Assembly (NCBI GenBank): GCA_051530055.1
Contig: CM121342.1
Location: 9,067,480 to 9,131,479, forward strand
Direction: 5' to 3'
DNA length: 64,000 nucleotides
From: Neoechinorhynchus agilis
Lineage: Eukaryota; Animalia; Acanthocephala
Part shown: positions 19,670 through 22,024 of the stretch, piece by piece
Layout of the letters: every line of letters begins with the position of its first letter
Position numbering within the stretch: the stretch's first letter is position 1
Notes under the pieces: model-generated
Database searches by the model: none
What the model saw: the letters and a program-made list of their open reading frames with translations, nothing else
Told to the model about the DNA's origin: nothing
Program-made: the position numbers and the translations under genes

Positions 19670-22024
19670 ATGTCATCCATCTCAAACGAAGCTCTTCAAC
19701 GTATTGCTCATCGTCTTCGTATCGAGAGTATCAGTGCCACCACAACTGCAAAATCCGGTCATCCAACGTCATGCGCATCCATTGCCGAGGCTATGGCTAT
19801 TCTTTTCTTCGACTCTATGAAATAAGCCATTCAATCTCGATGTAAATTGTCTAAAAGTCGAGATCGACTGGTAAATTCAACAAAGCATCCAAAATCCCAA
19901 CATGCGGATCGTTTGGTGCTCAGTAAAGGTCACGCTGCTCCAGTGCTTTACGCTGCGTACGCATTGGCTGGTCAGTTTGAAGTGTCGAAATTGTCGACTC
20001 TTCGTAAGATAGATTCCGTTCTTGAAGGGCATCCAACCCCTCGTTTGGATTTTGTCGATGTAGCCACCGGTTCACTTGGACAAGGATTAGGGTGTGCGGC
20101 TGGAATGGCCTGGGCCGGCAAATATCTTGACAAACTTCCATATAAAGTGTTTTGCATTCTGGGCGATGGTGAATGCGCTGAAGGCAGTGTCTGGGAGGCA
20201 ATGGCATTCGCGGCACATTATTCCCTAGATAATCTTGTGTGCATTATTGATTGCAATGAACTTGGTCAAAGTGAAGCTGTAATGACCGATGCTGAGGAAT
20301 ATGGACGCCGAGCTGGGTCTTATGGATGGCATACACGAATTATCCAAAATGGTAATGAGATTCGAGAGTTAAGAGAGGCTTTAAGAGCGTCAGTGACTTC
20401 TACAGTTAAAAAACCATTTTGTATTGTAATGCGGACTAAAAAAGGAGCTCACATGTATGGAATCAGTGGAAATGATGGGTGGCACGGTCGACCGTTGAAA
20501 GAAGATGAAGCTAAAAAGGTCATTGAAAAACTGAAATATTTAGCTTATGAAGGTGATATTGTTACTGAAAGGAAAGACGTTGACTTCCCAGCAGATGACA
20601 ATCAACCGTTGTGTCCGGATCTTGGTAATGACGCCCTAAAGCGAGAATCTTTAACAAGTAGCATTTGTAGCTTTATAGGTTGTTGTTTTGCTACTTTAAT
20701 TTGTTTGTAAAATGAAGCACTCGATTTTTGGCTGAACTCGAGATGTTTAATGTTTTGCCTTCCAAATGAGCTTTCTCGCGTTTTTCGTGTGCTAAAATTC
20801 GGAATGGTCCATTTGTTGTTTTTGCGATCTTTAAATTAAAATTTTTAAAAGCAAAATTCTTGATACGTCTAAAAAATTCCACGATTTGCTTAAGATTATC
20901 TCACCCATGAAATTATGAATCTTTTCCGCAATCTTCTACTATTAGATCCTGATAAATCTCGGTTTATGATTCGCTGAAATATAACATTTTACCGACAAAT
21001 AACAATGCGGAAAGGTTTGCATTCTCAAGTATTTACTTTAGAGGAATATAGCATCGTTAAGAAATTATAGATTTTCGCTATATTCTACAAACCTGAAGAA
21101 AAATTGGCAACTCGAAAGGTATACGGTGATGCAGTAGCACGAATCGGCTCAAAGGCGAGCAGGATAATTTGTCTTGACGGCGATACCAAGAACTCCACTT
21201 TTGCGTTGACCTTTAAAACCGCATTTCCTTCACGATTCATAGAATGTTTCATAGCTGAACAGAACATGATCAGTGTGGCTACAGGTCTTCAATGTCGAAA
21301 TCAAGCACTTCCGTTTGTCTCAGGATTCGCATGTTTCCTCACTCGAGCATTCGATCAACTACGAATGGCTGCAATCAGTAATGCTAGGATGGTCTGCGTT
21401 GGAAGTCACGCTGGATGTTCAATCGGTGAAGACGGTGGATCACAAATGGGTCTTGAGGATATTGCAATGTTTAGATCTCTTCCCAATAGTGTCGTCCTTT
21501 ATCCTTCCGATGCTGTTAGTTGTGAACGAGCCGTTGAGTTAGCCGCAGGTTTAAAGCATGGAATTTGTTACATCAGAACTGGTAGACCGGCGGTCCCTAT
21601 CGTCTACGCTCCCCACGAATCCTTCAAAGTTGGCCAATCACATGTCGTCCTAGAACACGGAGATCAAGATAAAGTGACTCTTGTCGGTGGAGGTGTTACT
21701 CTTTTTGAATGCTTAAAGGCAGCAGATCAATTAAAAAATGATGGAATTCACGTTCGCGTGATAGACGTCTTTTCAGTAAAACCATTGGACGCGCAGACCA
21801 TTTCTAAGAATACTCAGGAAACCGGTGGGAAGCTGTTGGTTGTAGAAGACCATTATCCTGAAGGTGGAATCGGTGAAGCAGTTGCTGCCGCAGTTGCAGG
21901 TCATTTCCAGTTTAGACATTTATGTGTACGAGAACTTCCACATTCAGGTGCTCCAGAGGAAATTTTAGCTGCAATGAAGATCGATGCTAATGCAATAATT
22001 GAAGCCGTGAATCAAATGGTCTAA
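19670..22024 (+). CDS. TKT: Transketolase; exons 19670-19824, 19876-20638, 21083-22024
   Basis: [70 protein letters not shown]; interrupted twice by non-canonical inserts. Confidence 0.97.
19823..19875 (+). other. Inverted-repeat intervening sequence 1 in TKT (51 nt removed)
   Basis: TA-agccattcaatctcga...tcgagatcgactggta-AA; contains in-frame TAA; removal gives [15 protein letters not shown] with the same spacing as human [15 protein letters not shown]. Confidence 0.8.
20637..21082 (+). other. TA-bounded inverted-repeat intervening sequence 2 in TKT (444 nt removed)
   Basis: TA-a-agcgagaatct...agattttcgct-a-TA; removal gives [15 protein letters not shown] in frame; nearby GT donors are phase 1 while the AG at 21070 is phase 0. 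Confidence 0.8.

Follow-up and report, generated by a model that had tools for sequence, protein, structure and literature searches.

An insertion of 51 nucleotides (nt) with inverted-repeat ends interrupts an apparently intact transketolase gene of the acanthocephalan Neoechinorhynchus agilis, and we put at about one in two the probability that this lineage-specific insertion leaves the transcript as a non-canonical intron. The gene lies in a 64-kb stretch of DNA (64,000 nt; here called the window, to whose first letter all positions refer) on a 16.4-Mb scaffold of assembly GCA_051530055.1, a hybrid assembly of pooled worms that draws on Nanopore, HiFi, and Illumina data (PMC12690905). Eight conserved genes are found in the window (Table 1), one of which, a SEPT6-type septin gene, carries a second interruption that appears to be of the same kind. 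A first-pass annotation had described a stop-bearing 51-nt hairpin insert in transketolase for which no GT-AG solution exists, and this description is confirmed by the sequence, by folding, and by a listing of the available splice sites.

Across the insert, the transketolase frame reads TTC GAC TCT ATG AAA TAA GCC ATT ... CTG GTA AAT TCA ACA AAG. Exon 1, with the reading ...FFDSMK, ends at the in-frame TAA, and homology to transketolase picks up 51 nt, or 17 in-frame codons, after MK. The TAA is a by-product of insertion within TA|T, the insert itself starting with A, and is not the end of the gene. Deletion of positions 19825 to 19875 joins the exons as ATG AAA TAT TCA, which encodes MKYSTKHPK and aligns with human transketolase without a gap; deletion of 19824 to 19874 leaves the product unchanged, since A occupies both 19824 and 19875. 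Only these two registers give back the conserved tyrosine together with the gap-free human alignment. Among 116 homologues, the restored residue is tyrosine in 100 and phenylalanine in 13 (113 with one or the other), and the 51-nt deletion maintains the distance of 10 residues to DR seen in the homologue alignment. These values bear out the earlier claim that removal of exactly 51 nt gives the conserved tyrosine and the human spacing, and the right boundary had accurately been read as AA rather than TA. They support the view that the insert is a non-coding intervening sequence of which exactly 51 nt must go.

The choice of register also bears on whether the insert might be removed from DNA rather than from RNA, as a germline-type internal eliminated sequence that is excised precisely from somatic DNA, as in ciliates. 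In Paramecium, the removal of TA-bounded internal eliminated sequences takes place in the DNA of a separate somatic nucleus. The transketolase insert resembles them in being short, intragenic, precisely removable, and furnished with inverted-repeat ends, and the septin element is TA bounded, but the transketolase insert is not removable from TA to TA without damage. Removal of both TAs (the register 19823 to 19873) places asparagine at the tyrosine site, a residue found there in 0 of the 116 homologues, and excision that spares one TA produces a stop (AAA TAA). Strict TA-to-TA excision, whether of a TA-bounded eliminated sequence or of a Tc1/mariner-type element, fails to restore transketolase, and the first-pass annotation was right to call it the poorer fit. 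The insert is present, moreover, in an assembly made from whole worms, and we know of no precise intragenic DNA elimination in animals. What speaks for such elimination is an inverted repeat of equal strength on the two strands and, in the septin gene, a TA direct repeat from which excision of the element plus one TA restores the frame. On balance, we regard removal at the DNA level as improbable.

Apart from its two interruptions, the transketolase gene consists of 1.85 kb of exon in which there is no other stop or frameshift. The conceptual product of 620 amino acids (aa) matches residues 9 to 614 of human transketolase (E = 2e-198) and contains GHPTS, SKGH, EGHP, GDG..N, ATR, NST, AEQNM, and SH.G.S.GEDG.SQ, which we take to be all of the cofactor and substrate motifs of the enzyme. 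As judged from these features, the gene is otherwise intact, unlike a decayed pseudogene, and is probably functional. Protein searches with each transketolase half returned only one N. agilis protein per half. In the bdelloid rotifer Rotaria, the corresponding sequence (HPTSC...FFNVMRYDPKDPRNPAGDRFVLS) lies in one unbroken exon with no intron at the insert site, and the aligned homologues have no gap or insertion there. Because the Rotaria exon is continuous at this site, the insert is a gain in the acanthocephalan lineage.

Public annotation has broken the gene. The only transketolase annotated in N. agilis is a split pair of NCBI models, ACOME3_006716 (N-terminal half) and ACOME3_006717 (C-terminal half, 100% identical), of 296 and 320 aa, which together span 19443 to 22024. 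In the first model, an invented 7-nt exon at 19443 stands in for the real first exon, and most of the 51-nt insert is translated as part of the protein. GET3 has also been split into two NCBI genes, of 202 and 108 aa (11141 to 13162), and GT-AG-based annotation fails at the transketolase and GET3 junctions alike.

The whole insert forms a single hairpin of 14 pairs (4 + 2 + 8, including two G.U pairs) around a 15-nt loop. Pairing begins at the second base of the insert, which thus has terminal inverted repeats, and the 13 of 16 paired arm positions counted earlier are accurate. The fold has an energy of -15.9 kcal/mol (z = -4.3 to -4.7), with 0 of 200 shuffled sequences equally stable. The antisense strand forms an equally stable hairpin; therefore, the structure is an inverted repeat of the DNA as much as of the RNA and does not indicate the level at which it acts. 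The flanking repeat is only 1 nt long (the A at 19824 and at 19875), which is no target-site duplication, and reading the flanks as TA or TAA duplications leaves the reading frame unrestored. An Rfam scan of the window found no family at gathering score and, near the insert, only a chance-level match (E = 2.4). Judged by sequence, fold, and Rfam, the insert fits neither a Helitron-like element nor one with a TA or TAA target-site duplication, and no bulge-helix-bulge or IRE1-type motif, mirtron, or microRNA precursor could be recognized in it.

Conventional splice signals do not account for the insert. An exhaustive listing of in-frame GT/GC..AG pairs around it contained no pair that retains the conserved residues. 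No AT-AC (U12-type) solution was found either, since the sole AC (19867-19868) would give a 47-nt removal and a frameshift; the U12 features (/RTATCCTT, a TCCTTAAC-like branch site, and AT..AC ends) are lacking, and the closest candidate start with AT, ATAAGCC, lies at 19822. Were a cryptic pair used for ordinary splicing, with the loss of some conserved residues, in-frame sites would be at hand, such as GC 19796 with AG 19885, but each of these pairs deletes at least 13 conserved residues or retains residues derived from the insert, and the donors are weak, unlike the GTAAGT, GTATGT, and GTGAGT used elsewhere in the window. We consider this explanation highly unlikely.

Nine textbook GT-AG introns, most of them of 44 to 62 nt, were resolved in the GET3, RINT1, kinase, and RRM genes of the window. 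Their 5' ends are GTAGGA, GTAAGA, GTGGTT, GTGAGT (twice), GTAAGT, GTATGT, or GTATGA, and their 3' ends are AG. Five of the short canonical introns were folded (44 to 62 nt) and proved T rich and unstructured (z of -0.4 to +0.3). Compared with these ordinary short introns, the insert is similar in length but differs in its ends and composition and is without a T-rich tract. Two other junctions were rejected as further cases: in TRMT2A (27334-27394, minus strand), a normal GT-AG intron of 58 to 61 nt fits and the annotation concurs, and the in-frame 48-nt gap of GET3 (12797-12844) is accounted for by an ordinary 45-nt GTAAGA..TTTAG intron at 12800-12844.

If the insert were kept in the mRNA, its stop codon would have to be bypassed or read through. 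Bypass elements are known from T4 gene 60 and, as "byps," from the mitochondria of the yeast Magnusiomyces. With its length of about 50 nt, its stop straight after a would-be take-off codon, and its hairpin, the insert resembles them, and the layout of a lysine codon AAA, an immediate stop at the foot of the hairpin, and a second AAA (19873-19875) about 50 nt downstream is like that of T4 gene 60. In contrast to these elements, the insert has no matched in-frame landing codon and belongs to a nuclear animal gene: with take-off from the AAA at 19820-19822, landing on the AAA at 19873-19875 resumes translation at 19876, whereas the transketolase frame needs 19877, and landing one base later loses the conserved tyrosine. 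Readthrough would add 17 residues to a segment of fixed length, and bypass leaves the 1-kb septin case unexplained. Retention of the insert in the mRNA is scarcely credible.

The septin interruption is the second case in which protein conservation constrains the boundaries tightly. The septin frame stops after ...AYKWGTIQV, and ENEHHCDF resumes about 1 kb on. The strongest canonical pair, GTAAGG (43454) with CACTAG (ending at 44490), causes a frameshift. The only in-frame AG is that of a GAG ending at 44492, and the use of GTAAGG..GAG (43454-44492) deletes Val-Glu of QVENE, a motif identical in the SEPT6-type septins of human, Schistosoma, and Ciona. The invariant QVENE is recovered only with non-AG ends. 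Non-AG ends thus recur in the window, and the base error at 19874 that had been allowed for as an escape from the AA boundary is unneeded. The septin element has a TA direct repeat at its flanks, and its termini pair (GGTGAA.TGTA with TACA.TTCACC). In both constrained cases the interruption can be read as starting with AG and ending with A, and in both the upstream exon ends in TA (ATA|AGCC and GTA|AGGT). The long interruptions can also be read as GT..TA; the two constrained cases are too few to decide on a general AG..WA or GT..TA rule for non-canonical junctions, and neither rule was adopted. A palindromic miniature element is nested in the septin interruption (44174-44378), with a copy at 51872-52076.

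Terminal pairing was compared among interruptions by taking 22 nt from each end and setting the best duplex against those of 3000 22-mer pairs drawn at random from the window. Protein conservation alone set the boundaries that this test used for the transketolase insert and the septin element. Only 0.07% of the null pairs were at least as stable as the terminal duplex of the transketolase insert (-17.8 kcal/mol), and 0.5% were at least as stable as that of the septin element (-15.2 kcal/mol), while the corresponding values for the nine GT-AG introns were 16 to 91% (-2.1 to -8.4 kcal/mol). By these scores, with the boundaries fixed by conservation, pairing ends are thus found in just those two interruptions for which canonical splicing fails.

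The removal itself, the RNA level at which it would take place, and the machinery responsible are what we infer from these sequence features. The insertion would have landed inside the Tyr52 codon of an otherwise intact transketolase gene, and the 51 nt would leave the pre-mRNA as a non-canonical intron with splice points at AG..AA (19825-19875) or at the equivalent AA..AA. The two splice points would be brought together by the 14-bp terminal helix and not by GT and AG, and either a spliceosome that is less strict about intron ends, as in Fritillaria, or a distinct pathway like the one proposed for Euglena might be at work. The earlier leaning towards RNA-level recognition is plausible. It appears that the insert is one of a minority class of young interruptions that have pairing ends and no GT-AG and that occur beside ordinary short GT-AG introns, with the septin element as a second member; this reading, according to which such interruptions must go for the genes to work, is the most economical. 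It is possible, albeit doubtful, that acanthocephalans have a second removal route beside GT-AG splicing, one that is defined by the helix between the insert ends and that neutralizes transposon-like insertions in exons.

Several observations weigh against removal of the insert as a non-canonical intron. Nothing marks the hairpin, with its equally stable antisense counterpart, as a signal at the RNA level. No further copies of the insert or of its arms occur in the 64-kb window, and this, together with the flanking repeat of only 1 nt, leaves a transposon origin as no more than a possibility. GT-AG introns are the majority here, and the spliceosome is not obviously altered. The protein collection, queried with both transketolase halves, contained only the two broken NCBI models and no transcript-derived N. 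agilis sequence. Tight constraints apply to two junctions only; those of GET3 and RINT1 and the second interruption of transketolase are ambiguous and serve only as leads. Terminal pairing in the second transketolase interruption, RINT1, and GET3-b was suggestive at first but is not significant when the freedom in choosing boundaries is counted. The transketolase case was also picked by a scan for anomalies, which raises the prior of a rare broken allele.

Such an allele is the main rival of the non-canonical intron. According to this explanation, the insert is a recent disabling insertion that is never removed and represents either a null allele that the assembly of pooled material chanced to fix or the initial damage in a young pseudogene. 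Any fresh insertion is by definition precisely removable, the site is lineage specific and has no splice signals, the assembly represents pooled worms, and the finding was selected for its oddness, all of which a null allele would accommodate. It is less easily reconciled with the conserved frame of 1.85 kb, in which all catalytic motifs are intact, with the single N. agilis protein match per transketolase half, and with the occurrence among eight conserved genes of a like lesion in septin and of GET3 and second transketolase junctions that are also without canonical solutions. Since lesions recur in this way among eight conserved genes, that many independent null alleles are unlikely, and we hold the null allele to be an unlikely explanation of the transketolase insert, albeit the one to be taken most seriously among the alternatives.

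A spurious hairpin introduced into the consensus during sequencing or assembly is very unlikely. The assembly is a Nanopore/HiFi/Illumina hybrid of pooled material, and an artefactual insert would be removable with equal precision, but 51 nt is no homopolymer-type error, and the 1-kb septin case cannot be an artefact of this kind. To our knowledge, the insert is also unlike SMRTbell, Nanopore, and Illumina adapters and unlike Hi-C junctions.

Removal as a non-canonical intron has precedents in introns that arose from transposons and that combine inverted-repeat ends with non-canonical boundaries (PMC11282704, PMC12501133). We found no report in the literature of non-canonical introns in Acanthocephala or other Syndermata. 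The closest animal case is the appendicularian Fritillaria borealis, in which AG-AC and AG-AT introns are reported to derive from miniature inverted-repeat transposons (Henriet et al. 2019, as cited in PMC11282704; PMC13326754). The N. agilis interruptions are like these introns in their lineage-specific positions, terminal inverted repeats, and lack of GT-AG, and an AG start is possible in both constrained cases. The septin direct repeat follows the logic of the Fritillaria TAC repeat, in that the intron would have the second copy of the repeat as its 3' end. In contrast to the AC or AT of Fritillaria, the 3' ends in N. agilis would be AA or TA, and the transketolase insert has no target-site duplication and no second copy in the window. 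Canonical GT-AG introns, which are the majority in the N. agilis window, are a small minority in Fritillaria.

The nonconventional introns of euglenids follow the code 5'-N3-CAG ... CTG-N5-6|R (PMC12501133, PMC11282704). They share with the N. agilis interruptions a terminal helix a few bases inside the ends, the absence of a polypyrimidine tract, lengths from about 50 nt to kilobases, coexistence with conventional introns, and boundaries that slide by short direct repeats. On its 3' side, the transketolase insert has CTG with a 5-nt spacer (CTG-GTAAA). Unlike the euglenid introns, it has no CAG at positions +4 to +6, where AGC-CAT or AAG-CCA is found instead, and in the AG..AA register the exon that follows opens with T rather than with a purine; the Euglena code, which is that of a protist and not of an animal, does not describe the transketolase insert. 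The introners of the dinoflagellate Amoebophrya are multicopy elements with target-site duplications of 3 to 5 nt in a genome that apparently lacks U1 small nuclear RNA (PMC7789003, as cited in PMC11282704). They resemble the insert in being transposon-like and non-GT-AG, in having inverted-repeat ends, and in residing in a parasite genome, whereas multicopy families, target-site duplications, and the absence of U1 are features of Amoebophrya that are not seen for the N. agilis insert.

If the 51 nt leave the mRNA, acanthocephalans would be the second animal lineage, after the appendicularian tunicates, with functional inverted-repeat-ended introns that are not GT-AG, and the insert, with its 51 nt, single helix, and single unambiguous product, would be an exceptionally small and clean substrate for studies of recognition. 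Acanthocephalan gene models and gene loss counts rely on tools that accept GT-AG only, which are shown here to break transketolase and GET3. About 40% of metazoan core genes have been reported as lost in Acanthocephala, in an analysis in which transcriptome data were also used (PMC12256650). If a helix-defined class of interruptions is real, some part of this loss, be it large or small, may be an artefact of annotation, because gene finders restricted to GT-AG break such genes. If the insert is instead a null allele, the result is an ordinary one and a caution concerning assemblies of pooled individuals.

Table 1. Features of the N. agilis window, with the transketolase and septin interruptions and the conserved genes
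Feature	Position	Strand	Basis or remark
Transketolase gene	19670-22024	+	
Transketolase exon 1, Met1-Lys51 plus TA of the Tyr52 codon	19670-19824	+	Open reading frame; aligns to human residues 9-60, including GHPTS
In-frame TAA (first two bases of the split Tyr codon and opening A of the insert)	19823-19825	+	Sequence
51-nt intervening sequence, AG..AA (alternative 19824-19874, AA..AA)	19825-19875	+	Only registers restoring Tyr and spacing
Left hairpin arm, terminal inverted repeat (GCCATTCAATCTCGAT)	19826-19841	+	Folding
Hairpin loop, 15 nt	19842-19856	+	Folding
Right hairpin arm (GTCGAGATCGACTGGT)	19857-19872	+	Folding; terminal duplex -17.8 kcal/mol
Transketolase exon 2, minimum extent (may reach about 20639)	19876-20624	+	Open reading frame; human transketolase alignment
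Second transketolase interruption, ends approximate	20625-21085	+	GTAATG (20625) and TATAG (21070) mutually out of frame; annotation split here
Transketolase exon 3, conserved YK to stop codon	21086-22024	+	Open reading frame; human transketolase alignment
Septin intervening sequence, 1033 nt, AG..TA (equally 43456-44488, AA..CT, or 43455-44487, TA..AC)	43457-44489	+	Gap-free WGTIQVENEHHCDF against SEPT6
GET3/ASNA1 interruption, possible further case	11764-12733	+	No in-frame AG acceptor; annotation split
GET3/ASNA1 gene	about 11.1-13.2 kb		Models 11141-13162
RINT1 gene	13.8-16.2 kb		
TRMT2A gene	26.8-28.1 kb	-	
PDK1-like kinase gene	39.4-41.1 kb		
SEPT6-type septin gene	42.6-45.0 kb		
RAD23 gene	47.6-48.6 kb	-	
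Musashi-like RRM protein gene	about 56 kb		

Of the less constrained junctions, the second transketolase interruption has an in-frame option, GTAATG..GAAG (21098), that would remove the YK motif, which lies 7 residues before ATR and in 168 homologues has Tyr in 152 and Lys in 112. This interruption falls in the PP-Pyr domain linker. Bacterial split transketolases are divided at the same linker, and the split-chain entry 6yak is among the PDB matches. In GET3, a single AG follows the in-frame TGA (12731-12733); it lies at 12749, out of phase with the GTTAGC donor, and a small intermediate exon may be an alternative at this junction. The first junction of RINT1 has weak canonical options only. 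Generic scans for removable segments whose loss merges frames gave many transposon and low-complexity hits, were positive in reversed-sequence controls as well, and were dropped.

Besides its genes, the window contains fragments of long interspersed nuclear elements (LINEs), miniature inverted-repeat elements, and one satellite. A look-up of the RAD23 open reading frame gave no match. Degraded, frameshifted LINE-type retroelements with reverse transcriptase and endonuclease are located at 22500-26300 (plus strand) and 57900-60800 (minus strand). The reverse transcriptase at 23425-24102, adjacent to transketolase, has its best protein matches in catfish LINE proteins at about 40% identity, and a search of the protein collection with it returned no N. 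agilis copies. Fish are hosts of this parasite; a LINE identity of 40% is by itself no pointer to transfer.

Evenly spaced short matches reveal tandem repetition about every 187 bp at about 61285-63516, in the A+T-rich end of the window (GC content, 0.29). Three blocks of raised GC content (0.44 to 0.46) and a very strong GC skew of +0.3 to +0.49 lie at 4000-8000, 32000-36000, and 58000-60000, where overlapping minus-strand open frames occur about every 150 nt, which suggests internal repetition. Miniature inverted-repeat elements with arms of 38 to 52 nt that are 81 to 92% complementary were found at 10640-10845, 49295-49467, 39890-40066, and 46990-47105. The first two of these are members of one family, and one miniature inverted-repeat element sits within a canonical intron of the kinase gene.

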